DNA of 64,000 nucleotides, from contig NC_135263.1 in assembly GCF_964204865.1 (NCBI RefSeq), positions 18,228,001 to 18,292,000 on the forward strand, read 5' to 3'. Of the stretch, positions 4,470-64,000 are shown piece by piece. Every line of letters begins with the position of its first letter. The stretch's first letter is position 1. The stretch is from Styela clava. Taxonomy: Eukaryota. The notes beneath the pieces are model-generated. The model was not told the origin of the DNA and did no database searches. It saw only the letters and a program-made list of their open reading frames with translations. The position numbers were made by a program, and so were the translations under genes.

Positions 4470-4946
4470 AATGCAAATGCCCATGGGTGTAGATGTTCAT
4501 GGGTGCAAATGTCTGTGGGTACAATTGTACGCGGGTGTAAATGTATGTAGGTTCAAATGTCCGCGGGTGCAAATGTACATGGGTTCAAATGTCCGCGGGT
4601 GCAAATGTTCGTGGGTTCAAATGTACATGGGTTCAAATGTCCGCGGGTGCAAATGTACATGGGTTCAAATGTACGCGGGTGCAAACGTACACGGGTTCAA
4701 ATGTCCGCGGGTGAAAATGTACATGGGTTCAAATGTACGCGGGTGCAAACGTACACGGGTTCAAATGTACGCGGGTTCAATCTGTATGCGGGTGCTAAAA
4801 TCCATGGATGGAAATGTATGGTTTCAAATGTCCGTAGGTGCAAATGTCCATAGGTGCAATAGTATACAGGTGCAATTGTCCGGGGTTCAAATTACGGGTT
4901 CAGATGTACGGGTTCAAATGTACGTAGGTTCAAATGTGCTGTCACC
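4470..4946 (-). repeat. Right TIR tandem array of the MULE
   Basis: GGGT(T/G)CAAATGT subunits; reverse complement of the left array. Confidence 0.92.
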
Positions 4947-5552
4947 GCATGTGACATATCTCGAATTATGTTTTTTGTGTGAAATATGGCGAATGTAAAG
5001 AATTCTTATGCTTTTATGAATACCGGTAGTACGATGTGGACATAAGGTATTTATAACATATTGACATAAAAATGACTGTTATTTCCTAACTTTTTAATAT
5101 CGACTTGTACCTTTGATACTGCACACGGTAATTGGTGAGTCATATTATTGTTCCTAAGCCAACACCTATTTTCACTTTTGAGAGGAAAGGTTCACATAAA
5201 TGAGTTATTCCTATTGTCACCGCAACATACATTGCCATTTGCCCTAGACTTATCTCCAACAACATAATTTTGAAAAAAAAAAATTAGCTTTCCAGAACGA
5301 GTAACTCAAATCCGTTAATGCCTGGGGATCAATGACTTCAAGTTGTATACATTTCACCTCTTCCATCGGAATGTTGAATGAACACATGAAAATTTTATAT
5401 ATATATCATGTGTGGACTGCTTGTATTCAATCAAATTGACAACCCGGGCGTAAATTCCTACTACCGATTAAATTATGCCCCAAACTCGTAACGGAGCGTA
5501 ATACTACGTCAAAATTGCACGACAAACGAGAATGATATTTTTCCAAGCCAAA

Positions 5553-5554
<2 letters not shown>

Positions 5555-5590
<36 letters not shown>
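5555..5590. repeat. (AT)n microsatellite
   Basis: About 18 AT units. Confidence 0.95.
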
Positions 5591-5592
<2 letters not shown>

Positions 5593-5636
5593 TATGCGAG
5601 GCAACGCTTGGAGAAAGGACGGGACTTTGAAGCAAT

Positions 5637-6135
5637 GGACCTTTCCCCGAGCATCGACTTCCTTGTTTACTCCGTGACATTGGCCAATCAGCAAGGTGCA
5701 AAAAGTGACGTAACAATGCTCCCCTCTCGCATCAGCTCAGACACTTTTCTCACTCAGACAGATTTTCAAGCGTGGTCGTAAACATTGCCTCGTTTCCGCC
5801 ATTTTGAACTATATTCATTAGTTTTCAGTTGTGTTTCGGAAACTTAAATATAAATCAGATAATTCAATGATTAATCTGTCTTCCTAGGAGTTTTAATTTA
5901 ATTGCAGTAATAAAAAATTATTGTATAAATAGCTGTGATAGACTAGGCTAAAATTCTTTATCGGTACTTTTAAAAAACAGATTGTTGTATGCGATGAATC
6001 ATAATGATGGTTTGAAACACATACCCCATTTTACAAGCGCCAACTCGCAAAAGCACTCTTAAAATAGCCCCGAAAATTTGGCAATGGTAAAGTATAGGAA
6101 GAATTGTTCGGGGGTCAAAGGTCGGGGAAAGTTCC
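5637..6135 (+). mobile_element. ~500-bp MITE with AT target duplication (ISL2EU/Harbinger-like)
   Basis: AT|GGACCTTTCCCCGA ... TCGGGGAAAGTTCC|AT. Full inverted copy at 42711-43199 and a partial copy at 1-67. Confidence 0.8.
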
Positions 6136-7003
6136 ATTGTTCTCGGTCTTTCATCACAGCGCGATATAATATGTGTCATTTGAACAAACACTTAAAAAAA
6201 GTTACGGGTTTTATTATAAATAGCTTGTTAGAGATCAGCGGGAAATATTTCCCGTGGGCCGCAAAAAAATCGTCCGGCGGCTCACATTATGCCATTTAAA
6301 GTTTGACATATGGAGAAATAATAACTGCTTATATATATATATATTGTTACAATTTTCATCTTGAAAAGCATAGTGTCTGATTAGATATTTTTATAAAGGT
6401 AACAAGCTTCTTGTATCTAATTGAGCATATATGCTATAGTATTCTGACACCAAATTGTCTTCGCGCACAGTAGGCCTACTACAAAGTGTGAACTTCCTCA
6501 TTTTTTCAAATTTTTCAAACGCTTCATGTGATCCAGCACCATGTTAACGGGTATGAGGTCGAAAAGAAATATTATTATGCGATTGGGGGGGGGGGGAAAT
6601 CAATTATATGGACTTCTATTTAAAAGCCGCAAAGGTGGAGATATTACGCGTCTTAAGGTGGTATAATCGCTATACCCCCTTTCTCCAATATATTATTCCT
6701 ACGCTTCCAACTCGTCCTTCAAAAATTTGCATCCTCGTTACCGCATCTAAATAAATCTTCCATCCAGGCTTGATTGAAGCAAGAAACGATTGCATATAGG
6801 TATAGTAGATTCGTTGATTTTAAAAAAACTTTTAAATATATGAATTTGCAAATTTTGGATATAAATTGGGCATCAATCCCACAGGTTTTTTTTCAAATGC
6901 AGTGTTTCCAGTTTAGAAAATATTCCATATTCAAAAATATCATTTCAGAGCGTATTCTAAATAGTTAATTTTATATTCATCCGATCTCCATATTTTTGTA
7001 GTA

Positions 7004-8033
7004 CCGTGTTTCCCCGAAAATAAGACTGGGTCTTATTATAATTTTTTTCTAAAAATTAACACTAGGGCTCATTTTCGGGGAATGTCTTATTGGACACGTT
7101 TAGTGGCCATAACGATAGTTTCAAAATTTTGTTGTTATTGTTATTTTCTTTCGTCATTATCATCAAAAAATCGCTTTTCTCTTCGAATACTGGACCAATT
7201 GCTTTGAAATTTTCAGTGGTTAAAGATAAAATTTTTCTCCAGAAGGCTATTACTTTTTTTTTCTCGCTATGACGTCATCAAAATTATTGCCATTGGGTGG
7301 CGCTATGTGTCCATATTTTTGAGCATAGCTCTCTTGTATTTTCATTTGTCAAAAACAAAATTACAAAGTAGAATAGCACGAGATTTTCAAATTTACAAAA
7401 TATGAATCCATACTTATACATAACACGTTTTTATTCTAAACAAGAGAGCTACGCACAAATATATGGACACGTCAGACCAGAGCGAATCAGTCCTTACCGG
7501 TACCTTTGACGCTACCGGTACCCTCAAAAAAGTTCCAGTAGCAAGAATTTTGCAGAATCAAAACGTACAGCCAGTCATGACACTGACTAAAATCCGTGTT
7601 CCCATGGATAAAAAATAATACAGCAAAATTTTAGACGAAATATCAAATTTCATAGAATTCACGCAAAATTTTGAAATAAATAAAAGTAATAGCCTTCTAG
7701 CGAAAAAATTAATCTTTAACCACTGAAAATTTCAAAGCAATTGGTCCAGTATTCGAAGAGAAAAGCGACTTTTTAAAAACGTGTCAAAGAACAAGAACAA
7801 GAACAACAACATAATATTGAAACGATCGTTATGTCCACTACGTGTCCAATAACGGCAAAAGATTGTTATCAATCATTTAAAACGTGTAGAAGAGATTTCT
7901 TGCTATTGACCAGGTAAAAAAATTGCGTCGTTCATTAGGTCTTATTTTCAAGAGAGGGTTTTTATTAAAATCATTCTTAAAATTCAGCCTAGGTCTTATT
8001 CTCAGGGCAGGTCTTATTTTCGGGGAAACACGG
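7004..8033. mobile_element. Tc1/pogo (Tigger-like) MITE carrying nested elements
   Basis: TA|CCGTGTTTCCCCGAAAATAAGAC ... GTCTTATTTTCGGGGAAACACGG|TA. Confidence 0.85.
7088..7852. mobile_element. Two head-to-head copies of a Helentron/HINE-like short element
   Basis: 7088-7337 (-) and 7439-7852 (+) share ACAAGAGAGCTA..ATATGGACAC starts and ..CGAT(C)GTTATG..GTGTCCAATAA ends. Family assignment is inferred. Confidence 0.6.
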
Positions 8034-21633: not shown

Positions 21634-24600
21634 TCAAACAGGTGCAGAAACCACAGGTGCAGGTGACATGGATGGTGTACTATTTGTAACATCAACCTCC
21701 ATCCCACTACTGCAGTCAGAGTTCTGCCTTTCGATTTGTGAGGGCATATCTTCACAAAGGTTCAACTCGAAATTTGCAAGTTTCGCTGCAGCACATTTTT
21801 CACAGACATAATCCAACTCTCTTGCTTCTTCAGGAGATACTGAAACACAGACACAGTGGAACCATCCCTCACATCCTCCATCACATTGTAACCAATCGAC
21901 TTCTTCCCCGGTTGGTTGTTGGCAAAACACTGAGCCACCAGTAGCTTCTTTAACGGCACAAAATGCATATTCATCGTCATCAAAAGCAACAAAAGTATCA
22001 AGAACGCTTTGCTTTCCTTCACTTTTTCTCTTCTTCTTCTTTTCATGTTTTTTATTGTCTTTTCCGGAGAATGGAGTCCCATCGGTGGAATTACGCTGTT
22101 TCTTTTTCCTTTTCTCAGCAAAGTTAGTTATGGCTACTTCCTCTTTCTTTTTCCGTTTTCTGTCGGCTTCTTTGTCAAGACCGTTAGATTTGAGTATTGT
22201 TTGGCTAGCTTCTGATTCACACAATTCTAAAAATTTTTCATCATTAATAGGTTGACTTGCCTGCAATATTTTCCATATCTGCTGAGTTTCATCCAAAGAA
22301 ACTTCCAGCAAATCTCCTTCCATCATCAACTCTTCCAGTATCGTTTTCATCTCATCTGGGAGATCAATAAGAGGACCTTTTAAAATTTCCTCAGTTTCCT
22401 TTCTGAGTTCTTTTACTTCTAAAGAAGGTTCATCAACTACTTCAGCTGAAGCAACATCCTCTTTGGTGGAAGTAATATCTTCAGAATGAACTGGATGAGG
22501 TGGTGTTTGTTCAGACTTTTCTTCTTTTGAAGTTTGTTCGTAATCAGAAACTGCAATTGGTTGTTCAATAGCATTATCTTTTTTGTGATTATCATCAACC
22601 TTATCCATGTCTTTTATGGATGGCTCATCAGTAGTGCTGGTAATAACCGCTTTCACTTCAGTATCCGGTTGATGCGACGGATTGTTTTCTATTTTTGAAG
22701 CTGGATTAGTGCTCTCTACTTCAGCATTGACTTGAGATTGGTGATGATTTGAAGCACATGCTATCATTGCCAAAACTTCTGCTGCCTCCATTACATCTTC
22801 TTGTTCAGTATCTGTCTTTGATGCAGCAGATAGAAGAGCATCAACACCTGAGGAATCTACAGTCCTTGTCTCTTCCTGTGGACATGATTTTCGAAGAACA
22901 CTATCAATTGTATCATTAATTGATTCAATTGAAGACATTCTTCTAGCAGTGGCAGATAAAGCTATTTCCGAGTTGTGTCCGTTTGTGAGGGAAATTTTAG
23001 GGACATCGGTTGAAATCTTTTTTTCTTGTTCCTGCCATAATTTTTCATTTTCTTTCATCTTCTTGTTTAGTTTTTTTATTATTGCTGCATACTCAGGGGC
23101 TTTTAAAATATCCCTTGCACGATCCTGCCAACTCATTGCACGTTCTGTCAAACACTGTAAAGCCTCACCTTCACGAATCCGAACAGGCAATTTCTGGAGT
23201 TGAAGCAAAAGAGATAAAATAACCTCTAACCGTGGTCTCCTTGAGCGATGACATAAAGGACATAAAAATTTTAGCTCATAGACCTGTTGTACTTTGCTTT
23301 TTTCTTTATTGAATTTAATCGGTGGCACACAAGAAGTATGAAACCAGTCATGACAGAGTTCACATTGAAGCATGAACCCGGATGATGGACGTTTGCAAAC
23401 ACAGTACGAGTCGTTTTCAGATTTGACTTCAATATTTGTAGGTGTTATTGTGCTCTTTCTATTGTTCCGCGATCTCATATCTTTCATGACTTCTAGTTCT
23501 TTTTCTTCCATGTCCTTGAACTTTGCTACTACCTCAGCTGGGTCAATAGGATTTTTTATATCAAAATTATCCGTTTTGGCCCATTTTTCAATCATTTGTT
23601 GCTGCTCTGTCTGTGCATCTTTGATTTTTCTTCGCATTGCTTTCAAGTTAGTCTGACCCCTATTTTCTGCAGAACGAGGACTCAATACTTCAAACAAAGA
23701 GAATATTGTGTTTTTCTTTAGGAAAGCTCGACAAGTTCTCTCTTTCCATTCTTGTGCTGCTTCAACTTGTGTGTTTAAAATTGGTAACTGAGACAGTTTG
23801 ACTTCCATAGAATTTGCTTGTAGAAGGAGAGCTTCCAAAACCTCAAGATATGGATAGTAATCCTGATTATGAATGGTATGCAACTTTTTCTCCCAAATGT
23901 TTGCTTTTTCAACCACTTCCTGTAGCTCAGCACAATGTATAAGTTGCACTGGAACATTTTGGGACTCGGATGTGATAACTTCTGCTGTTTTTAGACTGCC
24001 TTTTTCCTTCATTTCGAGAAAGCTTTTAGCCTTATCCTCCCATGCTTCTGAAAGATTGAGAAGTTCCTGCAACTCAGCCATTGCACGTTCAACAGCAGGC
24101 CTAGGTGACACAGACACTCCAGAATCTATCAACTTCCTTAATTGCTCCAATGTTATCAATGATGGTGGAGGATCACAATCATTTATTTCATCGTCCAAAA
24201 GGAGACAAGATCTGACTTCTTCTAACCACTTTGCTTGTTGTAGTGCGTGGTGTAGTAACGTCACCTGTGGAAGTTCCAGATCAAAATCTAGTGAATCCTC
24301 TATCAAAACAGCAATGTTATGACTGCAAGGTTCTTCCTCTTGCAGAATAATTTCAGTTTGAGTAACAAATTTTTCAATTCGCTTTATATAATCAGAAACC
24401 TGATCCAAGTTTGGAATTGTGCATGGTAAACCTAATAGTTGTAGATAAAAAGCCCTTATTTCTTCCAGCGTCAATAAACAAGTATTTGGATGAGTTATAA
24501 TACCAGCTGTGGAATGAATTTCTTTTTGCCTAGTCCTGTGCTTTCTAACCACAACAAGCTGTTGGGCAACTCGTGAACACTTTTCGGCTTCCCGTACAGC

Positions 24601-27084
24601 TGACTGCAATTGATGCAGCAAATCATTTTCTGGAAATTTCCCTTGCACAGCTTCTTCAAGCAATTCTTTCAATTCGTGTAATGTATACTTGTTTTCAAAT
24701 CTTGAAAACGCATCGCCTAATTTTGTAGTCCATGTATCAAAAGACTCCGCTCGCAATTTCATCTTATGAAGCAATGGAGGTAATTCATCCAATGTGTATC
24801 TATATCGAAGTATAAATTTACTTGGATCACAAGTGCTGCAGAGCCTGTTGACATGGAACGTACAGACAAGGTGATCTGGTCTACATGGGCATGTAATTGC
24901 GGACAAAAAGCATGCTGTTTTGCAGATGAAACACTGACGTTCATCATCGGGTACAACCTCAAAAGCTTCCCTTTCAGCTTGACATACACCAAGCTCATGA
25001 AGTTTCTTTCTTGCTTCTCTTTCCTCTTGCAGCATAGCAAGCATATCTCTGTAAACAGCAGCTGCAAGTTGAACATCTAAAACGTCAGGATTATTGGCGA
25101 CTTTACATAAAATTTCTTCGTGTGAAAACACACATGCTCTTTTTACTGCGCGATAGTGAGCAACAGATTGTCTGCCAATAGGTATCCAATCAGCTGGACA
25201 AAAGTTCACGGCTTCTGCAAAGTTATATCCCTGATTAAAACCTGCATGATATGCCCTGGGGAAGGTAACAATGAATTCACCCGCACATTGGTTAGTTCGG
25301 ACAACTCGCACACCATTGTTCATCAGAGTTGAAGGATTGATAGTGGTTACAAGATGATGCATAACATCAGGGTGGTTCTTGAATAGGTCAGGTGCGGTAT
25401 TTTGCATTACTTCTTCCAGTTTGATTGCATCTTCTCTTGGAACACCATACCAAGTCTTTGGTTCTCCCCAGTGAAGATAATTGATAGAATATGTCCAATG
25501 ATCTTCAATGTGCCAACAAAAAGCAGAGAAGCACATACCGACATAAACCCATGGTATTTTCATTCCTGACATGTCACCAGTCATATAACTTAGTAATGAT
25601 TGTTTCGCAACTGGTAGATTGTTTAAATTCCATCCACTTTTTGCATAATCCTCTTCTTCAGCAGAAAGTGGATGTTTCTCTTTGTCGCACATTCTAGGAA
25701 ATCCACTTCCGTGATTAAGAACATGAATATCGGCGCCATACTCCACTGCAACATCCTCTTCTATTGATCCAATTAATCTCCAGAATTCTCTTTCAACCAA
25801 CTCAGTGGGGATCATGTGAACAGGTTTTGTAAAATATTCTGACTTAAAAGCATCAGCCATTTCTCCAAAACTTTGTAGTGTGTATTGCTTTCTTGCTTGT
25901 TCAAAACCATAAGCGTCTATGACTTTGTTGCATTCTTTAGACAAGCATTTTGGACATCGCCAATCCCCTTTGGGAACTTGGTTCAATGGTGGAATCAGAC
26001 AGTAGGTATGGTAACTGTCATCACATCCATCACAGAGTAAAAGTTGAGTGTCATTGTGATCCTTCAGACAAACTTTACAATTACCCATTGTATCAAGAAT
26101 GGAGTATGGGAGCTGTTCTGAACCCTTCTTTCGTGTGTTTATTGAGGTTGTGTCAACTGTTGCGGTAGGAATTGCAGTTTCTGGCTTTATCTTAGTTTCT
26201 ATTTCCCCGTTGTAATCCATCAAATCAAATATATTTTTGCAATCCTCATTCTTCGGTTCTATTTTGATAGTAGCGGGTGCAGGTTCACTTTTAATTTCTT
26301 TTTTATTTGCCTCTTCTGATTTTATTCGATTTCTTCTCTTAGCAATTAATCCCAGGCCTACCATTTTTGGGCCTGCACCAAAAAGCTGCAATTTGGCAAG
26401 TTCTTTGTTATTTGATACGTCTACAACAAGAGATGGATCATCTATAGTTCTTCTTTTATTTTTCTGGCGGGCAGCTTCACTTTCATCTTCTTGCTCTCTC
26501 TGTGGTTTTACCTTGCTATTCCCTCCATATCTTCCTGAAAAACTTGGAAGTGGTTTCCCAGAGCCATCAAGGCTCTCAAGAAGAACGCCAGAAACCATTA
26601 TGTCATATGGATACAGCAATCTTTCATAATGTTGTTTTATTGTTGCAGAAAAATTTTTTGCAACTCCTAACTTTACACATGCGGCATTCCATTGGCGGTT
26701 CTTGCAGACTTCTTCAAATCCCCCCAATTTCCTTACGGTCTCATGGAGACCATACAAATCTAAAGGAGAGCCGGCAATGTGTGGCAGTCTGAATGTAGTA
26801 CCCTGTAATTCCCAAAACTTAGCTACTTTCTGAATGAATTGAAGTCGAATCCGAGTTTGAATACCTAATTCATTAAGTCTCTGTATTCTCGGTGTAAATT
26901 TGAAATTTTCTACGTCAATAGCAAATGGGGGTTGCCAATAAGGTGGAGGCCGTATTTTACAAATGCCTGCTTTTTCTGCTATAGGTCTGATCTTAGCAAT
27001 GTATCCAAGTGGATGAGCAAATTCTTCTTCGTTTGGCTCAAAAACTGGAGCCTCTGGAGGAGGAAAGAATTCATCATCAAACAT
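21634..27084 (-). CDS. KDM5: Lysine-specific demethylase 5 (JARID1/Lid), 1816 aa, single coding exon
   Basis: JmjN (PPPEAPVFEP..GICKIRPP), ARID, PHD1, JmjC with intact HIED..H (FCWHIEDH, RAYHAGFN), C5HC2 finger, PLU-1, PHD2 and PHD3. Confidence 0.98.
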   Translation of the reverse strand: MFDDEFFPPPEAPVFEPNEEEFAHPLGYIAKIRPIAEKAGICKIRPPPYWQPPFAIDVENFKFTPRIQRLNELGIQTRIRLQFIQKVAKFWELQGTTFRLPHIAGSPLDLYGLHETVRKLGGFEEVCKNRQWNAACVKLGVAKNFSATIKQHYERLLYPYDIMVSGVLLESLDGSGKPLPSFSGRYGGNSKVKPQREQEDESEAARQKNKRRTIDDPSLVVDVSNNKELAKLQLFGAGPKMVGLGLIAKRRNRIKSEEANKKEIKSEPAPATIKIEPKNEDCKNIFDLMDYNGEIETKIKPETAIPTATVDTTSINTRKKGSEQLPYSILDTMGNCKVCLKDHNDTQLLLCDGCDDSYHTYCLIPPLNQVPKGDWRCPKCLSKECNKVIDAYGFEQARKQYTLQSFGEMADAFKSEYFTKPVHMIPTELVEREFWRLIGSIEEDVAVEYGADIHVLNHGSGFPRMCDKEKHPLSAEEEDYAKSGWNLNNLPVAKQSLLSYMTGDMSGMKIPWVYVGMCFSAFCWHIEDHWTYSINYLHWGEPKTWYGVPREDAIKLEEVMQNTAPDLFKNHPDVMHHLVTTINPSTLMNNGVRVVRTNQCAGEFIVTFPRAYHAGFNQGYNFAEAVNFCPADWIPIGRQSVAHYRAVKRACVFSHEEILCKVANNPDVLDVQLAAAVYRDMLAMLQEEREARKKLHELGVCQAEREAFEVVPDDERQCFICKTACFLSAITCPCRPDHLVCTFHVNRLCSTCDPSKFILRYRYTLDELPPLLHKMKLRAESFDTWTTKLGDAFSRFENKYTLHELKELLEEAVQGKFPENDLLHQLQSAVREAEKCSRVAQQLVVVRKHRTRQKEIHSTAGIITHPNTCLLTLEEIRAFYLQLLGLPCTIPNLDQVSDYIKRIEKFVTQTEIILQEEEPCSHNIAVLIEDSLDFDLELPQVTLLHHALQQAKWLEEVRSCLLLDDEINDCDPPPSLITLEQLRKLIDSGVSVSPRPAVERAMAELQELLNLSEAWEDKAKSFLEMKEKGSLKTAEVITSESQNVPVQLIHCAELQEVVEKANIWEKKLHTIHNQDYYPYLEVLEALLLQANSMEVKLSQLPILNTQVEAAQEWKERTCRAFLKKNTIFSLFEVLSPRSAENRGQTNLKAMRRKIKDAQTEQQQMIEKWAKTDNFDIKNPIDPAEVVAKFKDMEEKELEVMKDMRSRNNRKSTITPTNIEVKSENDSYCVCKRPSSGFMLQCELCHDWFHTSCVPPIKFNKEKSKVQQVYELKFLCPLCHRSRRPRLEVILSLLLQLQKLPVRIREGEALQCLTERAMSWQDRARDILKAPEYAAIIKKLNKKMKENEKLWQEQEKKISTDVPKISLTNGHNSEIALSATARRMSSIESINDTIDSVLRKSCPQEETRTVDSSGVDALLSAASKTDTEQEDVMEAAEVLAMIACASNHHQSQVNAEVESTNPASKIENNPSHQPDTEVKAVITSTTDEPSIKDMDKVDDNHKKDNAIEQPIAVSDYEQTSKEEKSEQTPPHPVHSEDITSTKEDVASAEVVDEPSLEVKELRKETEEILKGPLIDLPDEMKTILEELMMEGDLLEVSLDETQQIWKILQASQPINDEKFLELCESEASQTILKSNGLDKEADRKRKKKEEVAITNFAEKRKKKQRNSTDGTPFSGKDNKKHEKKKKRKSEGKQSVLDTFVAFDDDEYAFCAVKEATGGSVFCQQPTGEEVDWLQCDGGCEGWFHCVCVSVSPEEARELDYVCEKCAAAKLANFELNLCEDMPSQIERQNSDCSSGMEVDVTNSTPSMSPAPVVSAPV

Positions 27085-33661: not shown

Positions 33662-35299
33662 TCAGTCCTCAGCACTTTTTTGATGTGTTAATTCCAGTAT
33701 ACGAATCTGATCTGTGATTTGACTTTGGGCCCCATCTCCTCCCGGAGTCTGGTGCAATTCTATCAGTTCTTGACGACTGTCCATTTCGTCAGTATCATCT
33801 ACATCAAACTGCTTGTGTGATGGAGCATACACTGAGAGTACCAGGAAAACATAAATATTCCATAACCCATAAACTCCTGTGAAAAAGGCAGAGTTAACCT
33901 CAACACGATGATCTCCAAAATCCAACATTCCATCATATTTTTGTGAAAGTATGTAAAACACAATTGTAAGGGCAGCAGTAGATATTGAAAGTATCATAAG
34001 GAGTCTAAACCTGAAGACGACTGTCTTGAAATTGTTCGCTTGTATAGAAGTAATGAATCTCTGCTTGTATGACATTATGCGAAAAACTTTAACAACCATG
34101 TAGCACAGCAGTAGAAAATAAATGCAACCAGCTACACTGGCAACCACAATGAGAATCATTGCAAAGTTGTGGTGCGTCCAAACTGTGGAACAAGGATTCA
34201 CCAACTGCATCCCACGTTCAGCAATATCAAAAGCTAACAGAGCAAACAGAGAAATAAAAATAGCACTCAAATGAAAACGATATGTTGAAAGCTTGTTGCG
34301 TTGTGAAGGATTCACCATATGTTCTCCCGTAAATATAATCCAAAAACCAAGCAGGATACCATAAAAGAAGCCCTGGCGAATATCTGTGAAGAATAGCATC
34401 CAGGGAGCTTCTATAAATATCGAAATCAATTCAATAGGTATATTCAAGAATAGGATTGAAATTCCCAAAGAGAATATGGCTTTTTCAATCAGTAGAGGTT
34501 TTCTTTCAAGAAGTTTGATTCTTCTCCAGAACCAGATTACTGGGAATATCATTAAGACCGTCATAACTGACTTGAGACTTGTCCACACCTGAGTAAAGCC
34601 ACCATTTTGATGTATTGCAATCACAGACATTTCTTTTGCATTGCCGAACTGATTGTACATACCACCATCTTCAGTAACGTCAACCGGCAAACGAAGGTTG
34701 ATCAGATAACGTTTATGTGGAATTGAGCCCAACTGAAACAGGTGCAGCAACTCACAATCATACTCATAATCTTCATGTTCTTCATCAAAATCATGATTGA
34801 AATTACATTCAAGTATGCGATCTTCTTCACATCTTGCCAAGGTTTTCCACGCCAATTTATCTCTTCTAACCGCAGAACTGTCCTCATTACTGTACAATAT
34901 ATGAATATCCAAACGCATCGGTGCATGTGAAACATAAGGATTATTAGTTTTATATGTTATTTTCACTTGAAGTAGGGCAAGTAGGTATTGAAACCATGGT
35001 GTCATTGTCATAATTCCAAGATTCCTCGGAATATGTGCTATAAGAACAAGATCGCTAGGATCTAATCCTGTAACTTTGACGCCTTGAAGATCTGTAACTG
35101 GGTCACAATTCTGCCTAGTGACAACACCAGACTTGTTTCCTTCGGGTATACAATTTGTCATAATGTGTTCTTGAGCACGAGCTGGAGGAGGAGCAATTAA
35201 ACCACCAATCAGAAAAAATATGATTTGCACAACCAGAAGGAACATAAATAACATCACAAGCTTTCGGGTTGAAAGAATTTCAATAACTTTTCCCGCCAT
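33662..35299 (-). CDS. WLS: Protein wntless (Evi/GPR177/MIG-14), single coding exon
   Basis: MAGKVIEILSTRKL..FFLIGGLIAP, IHQNGGFTQVW, DIRQGFFY..FWIIFTGEH, ERGMQLVNP, NSAFFTGVYGLWNIYV..YAPSHK. Confidence 0.98.
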   Translation of the reverse strand: MAGKVIEILSTRKLVMLFMFLLVVQIIFFLIGGLIAPPPARAQEHIMTNCIPEGNKSGVVTRQNCDPVTDLQGVKVTGLDPSDLVLIAHIPRNLGIMTMTPWFQYLLALLQVKITYKTNNPYVSHAPMRLDIHILYSNEDSSAVRRDKLAWKTLARCEEDRILECNFNHDFDEEHEDYEYDCELLHLFQLGSIPHKRYLINLRLPVDVTEDGGMYNQFGNAKEMSVIAIHQNGGFTQVWTSLKSVMTVLMIFPVIWFWRRIKLLERKPLLIEKAIFSLGISILFLNIPIELISIFIEAPWMLFFTDIRQGFFYGILLGFWIIFTGEHMVNPSQRNKLSTYRFHLSAIFISLFALLAFDIAERGMQLVNPCSTVWTHHNFAMILIVVASVAGCIYFLLLCYMVVKVFRIMSYKQRFITSIQANNFKTVVFRFRLLMILSISTAALTIVFYILSQKYDGMLDFGDHRVEVNSAFFTGVYGLWNIYVFLVLSVYAPSHKQFDVDDTDEMDSRQELIELHQTPGGDGAQSQITDQIRILELTHQKSAED

Positions 35300-51182: not shown

Positions 51183-52220
51183 ATGATTGTTCGGGTTCTT
51201 CCATTAGTATCTAATATCAGTGCCAGACACTTTTGTGGTGTGAAAAATGTTGTATCATCAAAATCAAGCCTATCTGCTATGCGATGTGTTCTTCAAGATA
51301 CAGGTTCATCTACAAAGTTTGTCACAAGAACATTTACCACAGCACAGAAGTTGGGAGCGAGGGGCGGAAGAGCTTCTTTTGTATCTCAGAAGGTTTCTGT
51401 TGGGGGAACTACTGCCATTACTGTGGGGCAGCTTGGACTAGCTGGAGCATCTGCATTAGGAATCGGAGCTCTATGTTACTATGGCCTGGGTTTAGGAAAT
51501 GAAGCAGGCATTATTGATAAGGCAGCAATGTGGCCAAAATATGTTCGGGATAGAGTTAAAGATACATATTTATACTTTGGGGCGTCACTTGGAGCTACTG
51601 CTGCAACAGCTTTAGCCATAGCTAAAAATCCTACAGCTATGAGAATTGTTTCAAGTAATGGAATCATGGCAATGGTACTATCCATTGGTGCAATGATCGG
51701 TACATCAGTAATATGTCGAAGCATTGCATATGAGCCAGGGTTTGGTTCAAAACAGCTTGCATGGCTATTGCACACTGCGGTAGTAGGTGCTGTCATTGCA
51801 CCAATCACTATTCTTGGTGGCCCACTCCTGATGAGGGCTGCTTGGTACACTGCTGGAGTTGTTGGTGGTTTGTCCACAGTGGCAATGTGTGCACCTAGTG
51901 AAAAATTTCTTACAATGGGTGGTCCTTTAGCTGCAGGACTTGGTGTCGTATTTGTTGCTAGCTTGGGATCTGCATTTTTTCCACCCACAGGAGCACTGGG
52001 AATGAGTTTGTACTCCATATCTGTTTATGGTGGCTTGGTATTGTTTGGAGCATTCTTACTGTATGACACACAAAAAATTGTCAAAGCAGCAGAATCCCAT
52101 CCAAATTATGCAGCCAGACCTTTTGATCCTGTGAACGCATCAATGAGTATATATATGGATGCCATAAACATTTTTATTCGAATTGCAATGATGTTAGCAG
52201 GTGGTAACAGAAAGAAATAA
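51183..52220 (+). CDS. GHITM: Growth hormone-inducible transmembrane protein (TMBIM5/MICS1), single coding exon
   Basis: GALCYYGLG..WPKYVRDRV..TYLYFGAS, RAAWYTAGVVGGLSTVAMCAPSEKFLTMGGPL, FLLYDTQK, DPVNASMSIYMDAINIFIRIA..GGNRKK; AATAAA at ~52316. Confidence 0.97.
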   Translation: MIVRVLPLVSNISARHFCGVKNVVSSKSSLSAMRCVLQDTGSSTKFVTRTFTTAQKLGARGGRASFVSQKVSVGGTTAITVGQLGLAGASALGIGALCYYGLGLGNEAGIIDKAAMWPKYVRDRVKDTYLYFGASLGATAATALAIAKNPTAMRIVSSNGIMAMVLSIGAMIGTSVICRSIAYEPGFGSKQLAWLLHTAVVGAVIAPITILGGPLLMRAAWYTAGVVGGLSTVAMCAPSEKFLTMGGPLAAGLGVVFVASLGSAFFPPTGALGMSLYSISVYGGLVLFGAFLLYDTQKIVKAAESHPNYAARPFDPVNASMSIYMDAINIFIRIAMMLAGGNRKK

Positions 52221-54068: not shown

Positions 54069-54480
54069 CAGTGGCGAAGCAAGACTCTCGTGGGCCCCCC
54101 CCCCCGCAAAATATTTCGTGGAAATGACCTTAAAAATTCTCGGACATAAGCTAAAACAACGCTTTTTTTATTTCGTCAAAAAGCATAACATGTCGCTCTT
54201 AAAAGGCAATGGTAACCTAAAATTTGCCGTTTATTTTGGTTACTTTAATTTTTTTCATACGTGCTTCTCTTCTGCCCTTTTTCTGCGTTTCTGTGCGCCA
54301 CTGAGAGGTTTTGCTTTCGACATCATTCTGACAGCCTTCGTAATTTTGCCGGTGCTATCAAACCAGAGAATGGCTCTGATCAAACCACTAGACGCCGATA
54401 ATCGATGACTCCCTGGCATTGCTACGTAACAAAACGATTTGAGCAGAACTAACATCAACTTTAACCCTTTCCGTGTGTCT
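54069..54480 (-). mobile_element. hAT-like fragment
   Basis: CAGTGGCG terminus at 54069; MSKAKPLSGAQKRRKR resembles hAT transposase N-termini. Confidence 0.45.
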
Positions 54481-55008
54481 GGTTGAGCTTTTGTTCTGGA
54501 CCTTGATTGGAAAAATTGAGTGAAACTCTTTATAAAAAGGAGTTCAAAATATATTCATATTTTAGCTCTATAGAATGTGTTATTATCAGATCCTACTTCT
54601 CGAATATTTATCCGACACGAACGGCACGGGGATAAACTATATGAAATGAGTCATTGAATACGTTGATACTGGATGTTCCCTTGTTCAAGACCTTGATTGG
54701 AGAAATTGGGTGAAACGCTTCATGTAAGGGGTTCAAAATATATTCATAATTTCTCTGGACTTTCAATGGTCGACAATCCGGGTATGTTGAACGGGAAGAA
54801 ATTTACATAAATAAATAATTGTATAAATCACTATTCTGTTAATTACTTGAAAATATTTGTATTCGATTGTTATTCAAATCGAATAAATTTACTTCACAGT
54901 TTTGCGTGTGTATAATTTTAACCTGGTGTTACAGAAGTATTGTCTATTGTCGACGACCATAAAGTAAGTGGTGAAGTACATGGACAAGGATTAAGCTTGA
55001 ATACTTAC

Positions 55009-56991
55009 TTGGAAGACATCCAAATACCGGTTTATTACAATCTTCTCTCTCACAGCAACATTTGCAGATGGTTCCCGGAATTTTAGGATTGCATTGGTAT
55101 GTATGCTTTCCTTTAGCATTCTGATATAAATGAATTTCTTAGTACTACTCCTTTCTGCAGGAGAAAAATCCTAATTTGATTGTATGATGGATATTCAAAA
55201 GAACATATAAATTCAAATAAATATACTGAACAGAAAACCCTGATGCTAAAGAAAAAAATTGAGACAAAACACTCTGGTAGCCCGTTTTCTTAAACATATT
55301 GAAAAGAGTAAGAGCAAGAAATATATCACAAAAGGCGACCATAGGAGACGAGAGTGAAGTGAAAAATAGTTATGTGCGTCAATGAAAAGATTGGACCTCT
55401 AGTCGTAAAATATTCATTAAATGCATAATGTAAAGAATTTATAAAAATTAAGACTAATTATGAACTAGGTATTCTGTGAAATGCGCTGAGAGAAGCAATG
55501 TATATTTTATTTATTACCTAGAACATTTTGCTGAAGGAAATTTGATTCAATGCCATAGAAAACATCTTACCTGAAATTCCTTATTGTCGTAATCAAGGTC
55601 TTGTTTGCATCTTTTTGTGATTCTGATTGGTGGAATTAAAGTCACCTTGATTTCGGAGTAGCACCCGCCCTTATAAAAAAACACAGATTGTATAAAGTGA
55701 GTACTCTAAACTAACAGGCTTATAATTATCGAAACGAATAATCTATATATGGAAGCAACGACTAAAATTAGAATTAAAATTCGTGTTGAAGCGTCCATAA
55801 AACATACTAGCATATAATCGTAATCATTCGTGACGTGCCTTTGTATCAAAGCATATATTAAAGTTGTGGTAGTGACTGAAACTCATCGATATTCAGATCA
55901 AATTTCATCACAAAAAGATAATTCAAACAGTTTTGTTGCATTGTACAACTAACTAACTCAAAGCAATTATTTTGGCAACTCTGGCACAAGATTGCATTAA
56001 AAGGGATATTTTATGAAGAATAAAATAAACATCTTGAAGTGGTAAGTCACAAATTAATTTGTCAAAATGATGTGAACTGAATATTCCTGTTTACCTGTTT
56101 ACTGACGTTAAACGCAAATTTATCGCTAAGGCTTTTGGGATTAATTCAGCATTTGGGCGTTTTAATTATATTGCACAAGGTCCATCGTGAAACTAGTAAA
56201 ATTTGTCTGATAGATTCGAATGAAACTGAATGATATACCTCTTTGCAACACTCGTGCGTTTAGGCCGAAACGCTGATGTCATATCCAATATATTTATTCA
56301 GAACTCCATATGTTATTATGTAGATATTTTGAATAAAACTGCGTCATATACGAATCAATGTAGAGAAGGGTCCGTCAACTGTGGACCGTTTGTCATATGC
56401 GACCCGTAAACAATTTTTTTTCGAACGTTCCTTTCGAAAGTGTTCATAACGGGAATTTTATTTAAGCATTGTTTAAAATCTATTGAAGTGATATATTCAA
56501 CAAACTTGTTGGCTGAATTTAAAGCTTTGGCCATCAAGCCCACAATGAATCAACACCATCCTTCACATAGATGAAAAGTAAATCAGAACATATTTTTTCT
56601 GTTGATTCTCAGCATAAACATACTTAATTGAAAAGAAAGTTTGTATTATAAAAGAAACCTGATATCAACGACGTATCTGTTATGTTATATAGGTTACCTT
56701 ATTTCTTAATATGATTTACGCCAACAACAACCAAATAATTTGCGTCAAAAACTGTGATAAATTGTTTTTTATCATATCTATTCAAAATAGACAATCACGG
56801 CTCGTCACGGTCCTGTTTATCTGAATGGGCAGCAAAAAAATATATTGTGAGACCAATAGAATTATTCAAAAAATTTGAAATATATACTTTGACAAAATTA
56901 CTTACATTCTCGCCATCGCATTCCACACTTTGTCCTCTATCAATGCAATCGTCATTCGACAAAGCTTTGTCACATTTCCAACATCTAACAG
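55009..56991 (-). pseudogene. Ly6/uPAR (three-finger)-like gene copy A; exons 2-4 intact, exon 1 and TATA missing
   Basis: Exons 56991-56906 (VRCWKCDKALSNDDCIDRGQSVECDGEN), 55669-55571 (GGCYSEIKVTLIPPIRITKRCKQDLDYDNKEFQ) and 55120-55009 (NAKGKHTYQCNPKIPGTICKCCCEREDCNKPVFGCLP); all GT-AG and in phase, with the CCxxxxCN signature. 3' end uncertain. Confidence 0.75.
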
Positions 56992-57705
56992 CTGTAAGAC
57001 GGAAATAGAAAGTAAACCTATTATAATTTACCCTTTACTGTGGCCTTATCTATCTACTTACCCTTATCTATCTGAACATTTCAACTCTTTCACAGTTTTT
57101 TGCAAGTTTCATCTGATAAATAAATAAAATCATTGTTTAAAATAATTCAACACAAATCAGTATGCATAAAATAAACATTATAATAAAGTACGATTTGGTT
57201 CAAATTTGTCGTTTAAATCCTATTCATCGAGCAAGCCAAAGGCAACAATTGCAATCCAATAAATATAATCGAATCGGTTCCAAAGACAAATCTATAGTAA
57301 AGTGATAAACCAATCTTTGAGCTTGCGATAAGTTGTCCTAGGAGAATGACTGTTTAATAATAATCTAAGCTCAAGATTGAATTGATTTTGGATTTGCTTC
57401 CATAAAACCATCATTAGTTATACAGAACGTAACTTCTGTAATAATTTGCATCAGTGACTTCTTACAGATAAATGGATTTGGTATTGTGTATCAGCGGATA
57501 ACCCAATTATTATTAAGTCTGTTTTACAAGTTGAGAAAAAAGAGTATTTTCTTTATCGAAAATATGTGTTTTTACCCGATCTTTTTTCCCATTTATAAAT
57601 TGAGAAGCAGAATAACTAATTGTGCGATGATTGTAATGACATGTCAGACTTCGTCGTATTATATCACCGCAAGACATAAACAATATATATTTTACTTTCA
57701 TGCCA

Positions 57706-58138
57706 TTAAGCTCTACACTTCAAATTATTCTTCCCATCTGTTAATAATCATATTTCCTGCAAATTATCTAGAAGATATGAAATAATACTGTTCAGTCTAC
57801 AAACAGGCCACTGTCGTTTGAACTATTATTATCTTCATAAGATCGGATTCCACGATAATGGACTTTGTGACACTTGCTTGGAAAACGGAACCGTCGAACA
57901 TTCAAAATCACATTGTCCCCGCCATGACTTCCCAAGATCATTTTCAATTAATCATTGTAAAGAACTGAATAAATGCCTCGTTAATCTTATTAACTTACTA
58001 ACAAATCTCAGAATTCAATCTTTTGTTATAGAATACGTCCTCATAACGGGTCGAAGCATTTGAACACCTAACGCGTAATATCATAGTTCTGGTGCACTAA
58101 ACTAAGCCAGTTAGAAGCACCAATAAAATAATAATAAT
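57706..58138 (+). mobile_element. LINE 3' end (I/Nimb-type CCHC tail) inserted in the left arm only
   Basis: LFSLQTGHCRLNYYYLHKIGFHDNGLCDTCLENGTVEH..HCP followed by an AATAAAATAATAATAAT tail; absent from the right arm (~61280). Confidence 0.8.
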
Positions 58139-61100
58139 CTAATCAAATTGTCAATAATTCTGTATCCTTGAGTTTGTATGCTGTTCCTATGCGACAAATT
58201 ATGGATGAATTTGGTTCATGGAATAGAGATTGAATTTTATGTTAAAACTTCAATAATCGACTCAAAGCCAGTGCTGGATATGGTACAGTACAATTGTCAG
58301 AGCGGCATGTAATCTTTAACCTTGATGAACAGACCATATCATGCTGCATGGTCGCACATTAGATAAATTAATGCTCTCAACATGTAGTAGAACAGCAATA
58401 CCTCAACAACATAATAATAATTCATAGCGAAATTTTATGTACCTAAGTATACCCAAAGATGAATCAAATTCCCCTGAGTGTATCAACTCCAGGGACCGCA
58501 CAGTATAATATTTTGAAACCTAGTTATTGACTAACATAATAGTTTTTAATCAACTTGGCAACTATTTATAAATCATTGACAAAGGAGTAAAGTACATCAC
58601 ATTCGTGTATGGGAAAAATAAAATAGCTTGACAGACTTTGTGTATGTATATTATTGCTTTAGCGCAAGGTATTTATGCAATTTCGCTGACATGATTTGTA
58701 AAACTGAATGTGACGAAACTGACGATCAAGTTGGAACCACTCTTACGCCAATGGACTATTTTTGTATAAAAAGTGTGGCAAGTTCACTTGTTTTTTTAAC
58801 AGAACCGAGTCCATACAGTTTCCGATTCCAAAATTTGCCCGCATGTTAACAGTAATTTGAATTTTTTGGTATGTCATCTTTGACGTAGCATAATAAAGTG
58901 TTAAATGAACTCAAATCTAGTTTAACAAGGTTCTTGATCCAGGACGAAATGGTGCAAAATAAGGAGTTGACGATCCCATCAATAGACGAATACGAAGAAC
59001 AATAATGTTTCGTTTTCAGACAGATGATCATGATCAATTATAGATGATGACATAATTTAGAATACGAACTCCTTCTTTTACTCAACAAAATTGAATAATT
59101 GCAGCATGCTGATATTATAAGCATTTGACGCCAAACTAGCCAGATTGCTTTTAGGATAATTGCGGCAAGGACGAGTTCCATTGTTCCCAGTAAAATAAAC
59201 CGTGAAACCCGTTGAGTTTAATGTCTTTCTGTTTCGTATTTAAATAAACCACAATCGTTAAATTCTTGCCAAGCCTGGAATAATCCTATTTCAGCAAATT
59301 GTACTTGATGAATAATAGATGTTTAATTGTTCCCAGGAAAGGAAACCTTAAAACCGTTACATCGAGCCTGGAATATTTGCGATATTACTTTTTTATGCGT
59401 ACGAGTGCAATGTCTTTTTGTTTCGTATTCAACTGAACGATACTCGTTAAATTCCTGCCAAGCCTGAAATAATCCGATTGCAGCCATTGGTAATTGTTGA
59501 TTAATAGATGTTAAATGTAAACAATGTACTTGAATTGTCATCAACTTAAAATGCCATAACTTGAAATGGTACTCCCGTTGTATGTGCAACAAGATGGCGG
59601 ACACCGGAACGTAGTATGTGTTTAAGGTTAGGCCATAATTTCAGGTACAAATACTACGGGAGTCACTTGGCTAGTCTCCGAACTTGTAATAGAAATAGAG
59701 TGAAAAAAATTAGCCGTAGGTGGAGAGGATTAACTTAAATTGGATATGATTTAATGGCTTTTTCAATGAATGTAATATTTTGTGTCCGTTTCAGTCAGAA
59801 AGTTATAATATAGAATGAACACGCCATCAGCATTCGGCTTATTTTACCCATCAAATCTTGACACACAAAAAGAGTTTGTGTTGGGACGAATGCTATACTA
59901 TACTTACTTTACGAAGAATTGATTTTTAGTCATTTAAATTGATCTGATGCGGTTTTATTCTACTTTCACCGGAGGCAATAAAACGTTTATTCCGTGACGT
60001 AATCGCGATGGTGGGCGTGAATGACTGGGAATTTCTCAATTTGTACCAAGTGGACTGTTATTTTCTCACTTGGTACGAAGAAATTAAAGGACTCAATCTT
60101 ATAGCATAGAATGAACGGCAAAACACGATTATTTGTAACGATATCTAATATGTAATTATGAATCTCTAAATAACGAATTACAGAGTCGCAATTTATAGCT
60201 CTTCAACCCACATACAGGAACATAGGAGATATATTATGATAAAGTGTCAGTAATATAGAAGGTATAGAAAAAAAATTGGTATTTCTTTAAGACCATTATT
60301 CTTGATACACTTTAGATGAATTCTTAAATTTCATCATTGCAATTTAGTCAGTCTTCATAAATATTGCTGAAGTTCTGCCCGATGTTCACTCTAGTAAAGT
60401 CAGCTGACATAAAGAAAAATCAAAATACTATTAACATGCGGGTCAATTTCGTAATCGGAAACTGTATGGCTCGATTCTGATCCGAAAACAAATGAATTAG
60501 CCCCAATTTTTATACAAAAAAAAAAAAAAAAATACTTTGGCGTAAGAATGGTTCCAACTTAAATCGTCCCATTCAGTTTTACAAATCATGTCAGTAAATT
60601 TTCAAATTAAAATCAATTGCGCTAAAGCGAAAATATACATATACAAAGGCTATCAAGTTATTTTATATGTCCCATGCACGAATGTGAGGTACTTTACTTT
60701 TTTGTCTTTTATTTATAAATAGTTGCTAGGTCGATGAAAAATATTATGTTGGTCAAATACTACTTTTCAAAATATGCATTATACTGTGCGGTCCCTGGAG
60801 GTGATACACCCGAGAAAAATTTGATTCATCTCTGGGTGTACTTGATCTATTGTTGTTCTACTACATGTTGAGATCATTAATTGTCTTATTTTATCTAATG
60901 TACTACCATGCAACCTGTGACTTGATTATCAAGATTAAAGATTACATTCTGACAACTGTGCTGCTGTACTGTCGTTCTGACAATTGTACTGCACGGGGGC
61001 ACGATAGATGATATGAGATGATAGAGCCAAAATAGTTGTCAGAAAAGTTAATAAAATCATTAAATGATCACTATGAATCGTGATTGAAAAATGTTATTCG

Positions 61101-61942
61101 GCACTGGCTCTTGAATCGGTTATAACAGTTTTAGGATAAAATGGAATCTCTATTTTATGGACAAAATCACCCATAATTTGCCGCATAAAAACAGAATATC
61201 AAATGTTAAGATTTATATAAAAATTAATACCAAATAGAGCAAGATTTCAAATTCATACAGGATTATTGTCAATTTGACTAGATGGCATAAAAGGAAAATA
61301 TTATTTGTGTCTTACGGTGATATGATACGACGAAGTCTGACATCGCATTGAAGTCATCACGCAACTAGTTATTGTGCTTCTCACTTTATAAAAAATCGGT
61401 TAAAAGACTCGTTCTACATGATTCTCAAATTTTACCAATAAAACCATCAACGTTGATCGGTAAATGGTCTCAAAACGACTCAAATTAAAATGAGGTATAT
61501 TTTAACCACAGTCTTTCAATGAAGAAGATATTCTTTTTCACAAATTGCAAAACAGTTCCAATGTTAACTTTGGGGTGAAATTACCTAATATTCAAATCAA
61601 TAGAAACATGTCAATATGTCAAGCAAGATACACTAATAAAATAGGAATGCATTTACTTTTCATGCATAATTTTGGAGTAATATTTTAATCTACATCATGT
61701 TTAGGAGAAAGATTGATTTGAAAAAGAAGTTATTTGATAAAAATGACACAAGGTGGCTGATTTTGTTTTTCTGATCTTCTTTTAGGCGGCGATTACCTCA
61801 TCTTGTTTTTCTACTTCCCTACCCAGAAAACGAAAGTTTCTTTTTCTACTTCTCTCCCCACAAAACGACAGTTTCTTTTTTCTTATCAATTGATTGAATT
61901 GTTATTTTATTTTTTATATGATAGAATTATCTCCTTCCTCGT

Positions 61943-61949
61943 ATAAAAT
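61943..61949 (+). promoter_or_regulatory. TATA box of Ly6-like copy B
   Basis: TATAAAA about 105 bp upstream of the ATG at 62049. Confidence 0.55.
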
Positions 61950-62048
61950 AGTGGTGCACATACTGCACTGCACATATTGACTTTTCGGAAAGTTGAAACT
62001 ATCTTCTGTTTACTTCACAGTATCTACTCAACAGTGTAAACTGATAAA

Positions 62049-64000
62049 ATGTTGAAATCCACATTGACGTTACTTGTGCTTGTTTTTTGTAGTGTCGACA
62101 TTTCAAAAGGTGAGATATTATTACTTTAATACTTCTTTCCAACATGCCGTGTCGTGTCTATACGCCTTTATTTTCCGCCTGTTTTTTGGACGAGAACCGA
62201 ATACTGACCCACATGTATAAAAATTCTGCTATCCGCTGATACACAATACCAAATTCATCTATATGTAAGAAGTCACTGATGTAAATTATTACGAAAGTTA
62301 CATTATGTATAACTAAAGATGTCGTATGAAAGCAAATCCAAAATTAATTCTAGATATTTGTGCAATAGGTCATATTGTTAATAATATGACACGTAAGCGG
62401 ATTGCTCACCATCTTGAGCTTAGATTAATACTGGACAGTGATTAGTTTGTAATTCTCCTTGGACATAAATATCTCAAGCTTAAAGATTGGTTTATCAACT
62501 TACTATAGATTTGTCTTTGGAACCGATTTGATTATATTTATTGGATTGTAATTGTGATTTTTATCAGGTGGAACTTGCAAAAAACCGTTAAAGAATTAAA
62601 ATGTTCAGATAGATCACAGTAAATCATAATAAGTTTCCTTTCTATTTCCGTCTTACAGCCTTTCGATGTTGGAAATGTGACAACGCTTTGACGTTTGAAG
62701 ATTGCACCAACAGAGGACAAAGTGTAGAATGCGATGGCGAGAATGTGAGTGTTTTTATCAAAGTATATATTTTAAAATTTTTAAATATTTCCATTGTTCT
62801 CACAATCTATTTTTTTGCTGTCCATTCGGATAACCGGGGCCGTGATTGTTCATTTTGATTATATATGCTAAAATATTATCACAGTATTTGACGCAAATTA
62901 TTTAGTTGTTGTTGGCGCAAATAATATTAGAAATTAAGGCAACAGATATATCAAGATAAAGTCGTTGAGATTTATTTCATAATACAAACTTTTTTGTATC
63001 AGTTAAGTATATTGATCTTGAGAACTAACAGAAAAAATATTTCCAATCTCTGTTTCTCTTCTATTATAAGGTCGTTGATGTTTATTTTATGATACAAACT
63101 TTTTTGTATCAATTAAGTACGTTAATCTTGAAAATTAACAGGAAAAATATTTCCAACCTCTGTTTCACTTTTATTTCAACATCAGTGGTCGGCAAACTGT
63201 TTGTACTGTTGTACTAAGTATACTCGTTTTCAGTAGTGCACGGGCCGCATTAATTCCCGCCTATAAATAAACAATCACCACATTCTTCAACCACAAACTT
63301 CCCGTCTCACCAGAAACTCCTATTCTCCTATTGTGTTCAACGCCGGTCTCAATGAGACGTGTATTTAGCCGTTTCTCATTTAATATCATAAATATATATT
63401 ATTTTTATTTACTTTTCATCAATGTGAAGGATTATGTTAATTCATTGTTATGGGCTTGATGACCAAAGCTTTAGAATTAACTGACAAGTTGGTTGGTTAT
63501 ATCACTCAAATAGATTTTCAATAATGCTCACAAAAATATTTTCGAGAAAATTTGTTTGCGGGTCGCATAAGACTGACGGTCCACAGTTTGACGGACCCTA
63601 CTTTCCATTGATTTGTATATGACGCGGTTTTATTCACAATATCTACATAATAACATTTCAAATAAACATTTGCGATATGACATATCGGCCTAAACGCACG
63701 AGTTTTGCAAAGATGTATACCATTCAGTTTCATTAGAATATATCAGACAAATTTTACTCGTTTCACGATGGACCACGATGTTTTGTGGACAATCAAAACT
63801 TATTTTAACTTTAGTCGTTGCCTCCATATATAGATTATTCGTTTAGATAATTATAAGGCCTGTTGCCTTGGAGTACTCGTAAAATTTGTGTTCTTTAAAA
63901 GGGCGGGTGCTTCACCGAAATCAGATTTAACGTGGGTTTCATTCCACCAATCAGACTCACAACAAGATGCAAACAAGGCAATGAATGCAGCAAAAACGAA
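62049..64000 (+). CDS. Secreted Ly6/uPAR (three-finger)-like protein copy B, runs off the window
   Basis: Exons 62049-62109 (signal peptide MLKSTLTLLVLVFCSVDISKA), 62659-62744 (FRCWKCDNALTFEDCTNRGQSVECDGEN) and 63902->64000 (GGCFTEIRFNVGFIPPIRLTTRCKQGNECSKNE); splice phases 1 and 0 are compatible. Confidence 0.85.

Follow-up and report, generated by a model that had tools for sequence, protein, structure and literature searches.

Human LYPD6, LYPD6B and LYPD1 are glycosylphosphatidylinositol (GPI)-anchored proteins with an LU, or three-finger, domain. The domain itself is defined by an N-terminal CxxC, 8–10 scaffold cysteines and a C-terminal CCxxxxCN (PMC6337849). Here we consider two cysteine-rich copies of such a domain in the tunicate Styela clava, copy A on the minus strand and copy B on the plus strand, which lie at the right-hand end of a 64,000-nucleotide (nt) stretch (hereafter, the window; contig NC_135263.1, positions 18,228,001 to 18,292,000 of the forward strand, our contig C18). 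A prediction made from the letters of the window (the original prediction) took A and B for a hidden pair of divergent genes encoding small secreted LU proteins of a tunicate family. It is likely, in our assessment, that they are head-only partial duplicates of a much larger tunicate gene, in which an LU head precedes Sushi repeats and a VWA domain, and that B is live while A is a relic.

Copy B comprises the following parts:

61534-62048, plus strand: upstream region inherited from a parent-like gene; homology to the parent-like copy D, described below, begins at 61534
62049-62109, plus strand: exon 1, coding part of 61 nt, encoding the putative signal peptide MLKSTLTLLVLVFCSVDISK; placed by an RNA joint
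62659-62744, plus strand: exon 2, 86 nt; AG/GT flanks and a contig of RNA run X10
63902-64000, plus strand: exon 3, first 99 of 105 nt; AG/GT flank, and the end of the X10 contig matches its start
64790-64880, plus strand, beyond the window: exon 4, with TGA after CNKPEL; exon alignment

Copy B is expressed and correctly spliced. A 639-nt contig from run X10, at a depth of 101, passes directly from 62107 to 62657, with a GT..AG intron (cut +2) left out, and the same joint recurs at low depth in run X7; the spliced B transcripts on which the original prediction had staked itself are therefore present. The X10 contig matches B without a mismatch, including at three exon-1 sites where B and its downstream duplicate, copy C, differ, and past 62745 it carries on into exon 3 for 30 letters. 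The open reading frame (ORF) is intact, and so are the putative signal peptide and each of the four splice junctions. A TATAAAA, read by eye, lies at 61942-61948 upstream of exon 1, and we infer that the upstream region is an inherited promoter.

Reading B exon by exon yields 110 codons: the signal peptide, FRCWKC...CRCCCVGEDCNKPEL, and TGA. By eye, the start of MLKSTLTLLVLVFCSVDISK(A) is basic, its hydrophobic core measures 13 residues, and S-K-A comes just ahead of FRCWKC. The predicted precursor thus consists of a signal peptide of 20–21 residues and an LU domain of ~89 residues that ends 5 residues past CCxxxxCN, with no anchor signal—on this exon-by-exon reading, a predicted SLURP-type protein, secreted and with a single LU domain. 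A GPI-anchored Ly6 protein was considered and rejected, since the B frame ends 5 residues after CN and the parental exon-4 donor splices to a Sushi exon.

The origin of these copies is best appreciated by comparison with copy D, a complete parent-like gene on contig C6 (G000:C6, ~10116600-10131260) with Sushi exons and VWA downstream. D is the closest complete gene, with 86% nucleotide identity over exons 2–4, and the AG/GT-flanked exon structure is common to A, B, C and D. Homology between D and B (D 4060-7920 versus B 61534-65117, of which D 4060-5107 pairs with B 61534-62554) starts ~540 nt before the ATG and ends once ~40 nt of the first Sushi exon have been covered. Homology between D and A begins only at D 4769 and runs to D 7928, where D L012 7385-7928 pairs with copy A 55325-54750. 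Past the first ~40 nt of this Sushi exon, D and the C18 copies are unrelated. Using four family proteins as tblastn queries, many Sushi exons and a VWA were found after the D head (L012 9111 to L033 9263), with VWA exons only at D (L033 7738-9263); neither Sushi nor VWA exons reached E<=1e-3 anywhere in the window or across the 30 kb downstream of B (L009-L011). Because homology stops ~40 nt into the Sushi exon and no Sushi or VWA exons follow, A, B and C are DNA-level 5' partial duplicates of a D-like gene. The splicing of the parental gene can be read from P0071, a transcript-derived sequence 70–91% identical to D: it reads ...GCLPSYPDC..., so parental exon 4 splices into that Sushi exon. 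A retrocopy origin was rejected, since the introns are duplicated too, as is the upstream DNA, in agreement with the original prediction.

Just past the end of parent-gene homology on the A side lie two direct copies (77%) of a 62-nt element, at 54479-54540 and 54669-54730, and the breakpoint of B and C is likewise followed by the 62-nt-element sequence. From these positions, the element may be the mark of the partial-duplication junction.

The original prediction had raised the possibility of further copies beyond the window, and proposed counting paralogs. One more copy was found nearby: copy C, on the same contig and strand as B, 11.5 kb downstream and 93% identical to it, which carries a frameshift (a 2-nt deletion) just before the last cysteine of the family. 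A more distant relative, copy E, resides on contig C1. Genome-wide exon searches at E<=1 returned 25 exon-4-like matches (11 at E<=1e-3), 18 exon-3-like and 9 exon-2-like; among 20 loci inspected, ~20 more genes share the three-exon layout and CRCCCxxDxCN...C. Exon for exon, A, B and C can be aligned with D and ~20 other loci across a 14-cysteine head with CRCCC..CN..C, of which each of the three retains 13/14 cysteines.

The proteins to which this head belongs are mostly large. All searches with the window copies were run exon by exon, and relatives among known proteins were sought with a natural contiguous stretch of 76 residues from a paralogue on contig C17, in which exons 3 and 4 are fused by loss of the intron (L028 4716-4943, minus strand; G000:C17:7472716-7472943; one ORF of 124 residues). 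While a word search with this query returned a single unnamed 90-residue fragment, HMMER gave 97 matches at E<=1e-3, most of them long (up to 1955 residues) and matching at residues ~46-125. Sushi occurs in 7/10 and VWA in 5/10 of the first ten matches; among the 54 matches outside our family alignment A2, which are the longer ones, the counts are 38/54 and 37/54, and among the 48 rows of A2, mostly shorter matches or fragments plus five cluster members, 14/48 and 12/48. The named matches come from Styela clava, Clavelina lepadiformis, Ciona, Phallusia, Oikopleura and one holothurian, and their names are all automated: "P-/E-selectin-like", "SVEP1-like" or "unnamed". Short stand-alone relatives do exist, such as P0066 (135 residues) and P0055 (117 residues). 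Nonetheless, as judged from these architectures, the domain stands at the N-terminus of a tunicate-wide LU-Sushi(n)-VWA design, and does not define a small-protein family as originally proposed. The family behind B and C would number ~24 loci in Styela clava, with members in ascidians and Oikopleura. Searches of open-access full text turned up no publication on Ly6-type genes in Styela, and none on an LU-Sushi-VWA family.

At the level of sequence, the head is LU/three-finger-like, as the original prediction had read from its CCxxxxCN. Exons 2–4 of B read C-x2-C-x8-C-x8-C, then C-x19-C-x5-C, then C..C-x-CCC-x4-CN, which provides the LU cysteine framework; the A pattern equals that of B except that the seventh scaffold cysteine, kept by B, C and D, is a tyrosine. 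A profile built on A2 matches human LYPD1 over the whole domain (E=6.6e-8), and P0055 alone matches LYPD6B (3.2e-5) and LYPD6 (0.04) in cysteine register. Against Pfam, P0055 gives sub-threshold matches to UPAR_LY6_2 (the best), Toxin_TOLIP and UPAR_LY6, and Toxin_TOLIP matches at E<=1 in 11/48 A2 members. The holothurian protein P0003 exceeds the Pfam cut-offs for both CD59 (48.1 bits; cut-off 33.9) and Toxin_TOLIP (39.3; 21.2). Even a poorer profile, A3, places only three-finger proteins (LYPD1, LYPD6B, activin receptor) in its top ranks. When B exon peptides were aligned with the family profile by hhalign, exon 3 scored 88% and exon 4 95% probability. The fused-exon C17 paralogue matched no Pfam family, and phmmer against PDB gave 0 matches for it.

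Copy A presents a different picture from B, and is made up of the following remains:

56906-56991, minus strand: exon 2, 86 nt, first finger with 4 cysteines, peptide VRCWKCDKALSNDDCIDRGQSVECDGEN; AG/GT flanks
55571-55669, minus strand: exon 3, 99 nt, with a 2-codon deletion and tyrosine at the seventh scaffold cysteine; alignment with B, C and D
55009-55120, minus strand: exon 4, 112 nt, CKCCCEREDCN and a trailing cysteine, ending in phase 1; AG/GT flanks
54750-54786, minus strand: remnant of parental exon 5 (the first Sushi exon), first ~40 nt; D homology stops here
57513-57592, minus strand: deletion scar, 79 nt versus 826 nt in B (61392-62217)

The B segment missing from A (61392-62217) includes exon 1 together with the core promoter before it and the beginning of intron 1; a counterpart in A was sought for 61555-62217, and none was found. 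Since D also has the promoter and exon-1 segment, it is A that suffered a deletion, of ~660 bp. The exon-1 peptide of B has no other match in the whole window, so no second exon-1-like sequence exists there. In the contig sets of four RNA-type runs, in which B reached a depth of 101, exon 2 of A has depth 0. Furthermore, the acceptor of the exon-5 remnant reads CAA in place of CAG. Exons 2–4 are still open, and the branch leading to A carries 14 non-synonymous and 7 synonymous changes (omega ~0.46, p=0.10 versus neutral), with an exon rate of 0.084 versus 0.054 in non-coding DNA. Given the deleted promoter and first exon, the lost scaffold cysteine, the mutated exon-5 acceptor and the absence of RNA, we read copy A as a dead-looking relic.

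Several features of the original gene models are borne out by this anatomy, and others are not. The micro-exons of 61–112 bp have the sizes given for them, with canonical AG/GT flanks, and the peptide strings quoted from them were correct. The signal-peptide exon holds for B and fails for A; exons 2–4 of A stand, although its 3' end is left open by an exon 4 that ends in phase 1. Most scaffold cysteines are indeed kept, apart from the tyrosine in A and the losses of the last family cysteine to the TGA in B and the frameshift in C.

How, then, should the pair be interpreted? That A and B are equivalent, functional divergent genes of a tunicate family of small secreted Ly6-like proteins now seems very unlikely. 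This idea gains something from the open exons 2–4, canonical splice sites and CCxxxxCN of both copies, from the splicing of B as predicted, and from the few short stand-alone relatives. It was already weakened by the deletion that leaves A with neither exon 1 nor promoter, and fares no better against the missing scaffold cysteine, the contrast in RNA depth between A and B, the dominance of LU-Sushi-VWA proteins in the family, and the termination of the copies within a parental Sushi exon. A second possibility, which we regard as unlikely though less so, is that A, B and C are all non-functional relics, such that the RNA of B stems from its inherited promoter and splice sites and the excess of amino-acid changes from relaxed constraint. 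Each copy does have its own defect relative to the 14-cysteine pattern (the seventh cysteine and exon 1 in A, the stop in B, the frameshift in C). Pairwise ratios of non-synonymous to synonymous rates (dN/dS), a measure that the original prediction had proposed, would suit such relaxation for A–B (1.27) and B–D (0.99); the value for A–D is 0.31. Set against decay of all three copies are the intact ORF, signal peptide and four splice junctions of B, the depth of its contig, and the pattern of substitution in the B/C lineage.

This pattern was obtained by counting changes, summed over exons, along branches by parsimony, with D as the single outgroup. Between B and C, 6/330 exon sites differ versus 239/3882 non-coding sites (p=5e-4), and for exons 2–4 alone the figure is 3/269 (p=1.2e-4), such that B/C exons are ~4x better conserved than introns and flanks. 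Gene conversion as the source of this exon identity was rejected, there being no long identical tract around the exons. On the stem leading to B and C, 23 non-synonymous changes accompany 1 synonymous change, or 17 and 0 when the stretch adjoining the 7-codon deletion of B and C is left out. This excess goes beyond neutral expectation (one-sided p=0.03-0.04, taking 0.19 as the synonymous share under neutrality), and the exon rate of the stem is 0.076 versus 0.035 in non-coding DNA (p=0.006). The D branch is constrained, by contrast, with 0.042 in exons versus 0.218 in non-coding DNA, and 5 non-synonymous to 6 synonymous changes. The pairwise dN/dS values are in agreement. Fast protein change before the B/C split, followed by constraint, appears to fit these counts better than steady decay, and at the protein level the B/C lineage was fast, as the original prediction of rapid diversification expected; we consider the B/C line to be probably a young functional gene.

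A number of observations weigh against a live B, a dead A and an LU head, and temper our preference for them. The number of cysteines in the mature part of B is odd, at 13, since the frame stops at TGA immediately ahead of the last cysteine of the family; C loses the same cysteine through its 2-nt deletion, and such loss is equally readable as decay. About 505 nt of the X10 contig fall outside the compared stretch, as does the 3' end of the B transcript. The RNA nature of the runs is itself assumed, though a joint that lacks the intron speaks for RNA. Substitution counts, which come from parsimony with one outgroup, are small. For A, exons 2–4 remain open and the branch does not differ from an omega of 1, so A may have died only recently, and its absence from four contig sets is no proof of silence. 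As for the domain, hhalign gave no alignment of B exon 2 with profile A3, which is poor in N-terminal columns, and Pfam recognized no family in 8/8 single-exon peptides, which are only pieces of the domain.

Partial duplication of an LU-Sushi-VWA head, with B alive and A a relic, invites a scheme for how the locus arose. A segmental DNA copy of the first ~3.9 kb of a D-like gene—~540 nt of upstream sequence, exons 1–4, which encode the signal peptide and the 14-cysteine Ly6/uPAR-type domain, plus the opening ~40 nt of the first Sushi exon—would have landed on C18 without the Sushi and VWA exons. An inverted duplication would next have given rise to A and B, and lastly a ~11-kb unit would have been duplicated in tandem to yield B and C. 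B would have kept its inherited promoter and splice sites, and so be transcribed and spliced, while A would have lost its promoter and signal-peptide exon in the ~660-bp deletion. Non-coding identity is ~75% between D and the others, ~78% between A and B, and ~94% between B and C; together with the content of the tandem unit, these values suggest the order of partial copy, inverted duplication and tandem duplication. The tandem duplication that gave copy C spans window coordinates 58411-68860 and 69365-82026 (L009-L011) at 84–94% identity. Since the duplicated unit includes the tip of arm 1 of the inverted duplication as well as the spacer, C possesses a partial palindrome of its own. Downstream of C, at ~82129-84640 in window coordinates (L011), lies a satellite-like array with many staggered self-matches at 72–88%.

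The inverted duplication that the original prediction perceived is real: a repeat search found 20 inverted repeat pairs in the window (for example, 227 nt at 86%), and arm-against-arm comparison by blastn gave nine collinear blocks at 72.8–86.7% identity. Limits of the arms, below, were taken from self-comparison that included DNA past the window end; at the ends, 54476-55379 pairs with 65399-64562, and 58286-58879 with 60963-60402 (window coordinates).

54476-58879, minus strand: arm 1, with copy A; pairs with arm 2 at 73–87% identity
60402-64000, continuing to window coordinate ~65399, plus strand: arm 2, with copy B; pairs with arm 1
58880-60401, no strand: unpaired spacer between the arms, ~1.5 kb; no blastn pairing
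57706-58173, no strand: insertion specific to arm 1; 79 nt at the matching place in arm 2 (blastn)

On its plus strand, the insertion in arm 1 resembles by eye the Cys/His-rich tail of a non-LTR (long terminal repeat) retrotransposon ORF, and is a candidate for such an element. At the palindrome centre, spacer positions 59567-59694 belong to a high-copy interspersed repeat of ~145 nt, with 1409 first-look candidates genome-wide. An adjacent inverted partial copy of this repeat is often present, and short contigs of all four RNA-type runs accumulate there; between 54000 and 64000, the repeat included, there is no Rfam match. Elsewhere in the window, three long intron-less ORFs encode a KDM5-type demethylase (21634-27084, minus strand; JmjN, ARID, PHD, JmjC, PLU-1), Wntless (33662-35299, minus strand) and a Bax-inhibitor-1 family protein (51183-52220, plus strand).

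What might a freed head do? One possibility, which we advance tentatively, is that B/C is a newborn gene in which the head has been released from its stalk, its fingers reshaped by positive selection, and the product kept as a secreted modulator of, or decoy for, the partner of the parental protein. Such reshaping would be reflected in 17–23 amino-acid versus 0–1 silent changes, and in a third finger shortened by 7 residues. By binding the partner of the parental head, a freed B head may serve as a soluble competitor; it could instead engage a new partner via its reshaped fingers.

While the finding opens no long-standing question, it does correct a tempting annotation: the "hidden Ly6 genes" would be head-only fragments of a far larger type of gene, one live and one dead. 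It also illustrates, in three dated steps, how partial duplication can give birth to a gene, and parent, relic and expressed derivative can be seen together in one genome. More broadly, it highlights a tunicate family, apparently unstudied, with an LU head on a Sushi-VWA chain. This family, which unites CD59-like, complement-control and factor-B-like modules, is of relevance to the shuffling of complement-type modules near the origin of vertebrates.

Comparison with known proteins places these copies in perspective. Their nearest counterparts are the tunicate LU-Sushi-VWA proteins themselves (e.g., Styela clava XP_039254472.2, our P0009, and XP_039262624.2, P0105), whose head is shared with the window copies in both the pattern xxCWxC...KRCKQxxAC...QCNP..SVCRCCCxxDxCN...C and the three-exon layout. 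Unlike these proteins, A, B and C have neither Sushi repeats nor VWA, and end ~40 nt into the first Sushi exon. Outside the tunicates, Holothuria leucospilota KAJ8019844.1 (P0003) comprises four tandem homologous domains (E=1.6e-15 to the fused-exon query); unlike the tunicate family, this echinoderm protein has Thr-rich linkers between its domains and lacks both Sushi and VWA. Activin type II receptor ectodomains resemble the family in their three-finger-type cysteine pattern, with CCC....CN, although their matches are at noise level (E=2.5-9), and no kinase or transmembrane part occurs in the window copies. Among solved structures, human LYPD6, LYPD6B and LYPD1 (PDB 6ib6, 6zso and 6zss) are the best matches of the family, aligned along the entire domain with the cysteines in register. 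The tunicate domain is set apart from these LU domains by its 14 cysteines, CCC triplet and trailing cysteine, and by the fusion of the parent to Sushi and VWA. For the architecture predicted for B, the closest parallel is provided by SLURP-1 and SLURP-2, which are described as consisting of a signal peptide and one LU domain without an anchor. The likeness is one of architecture: B would descend from a truncated multidomain gene, and not from a Ly6 gene cluster.

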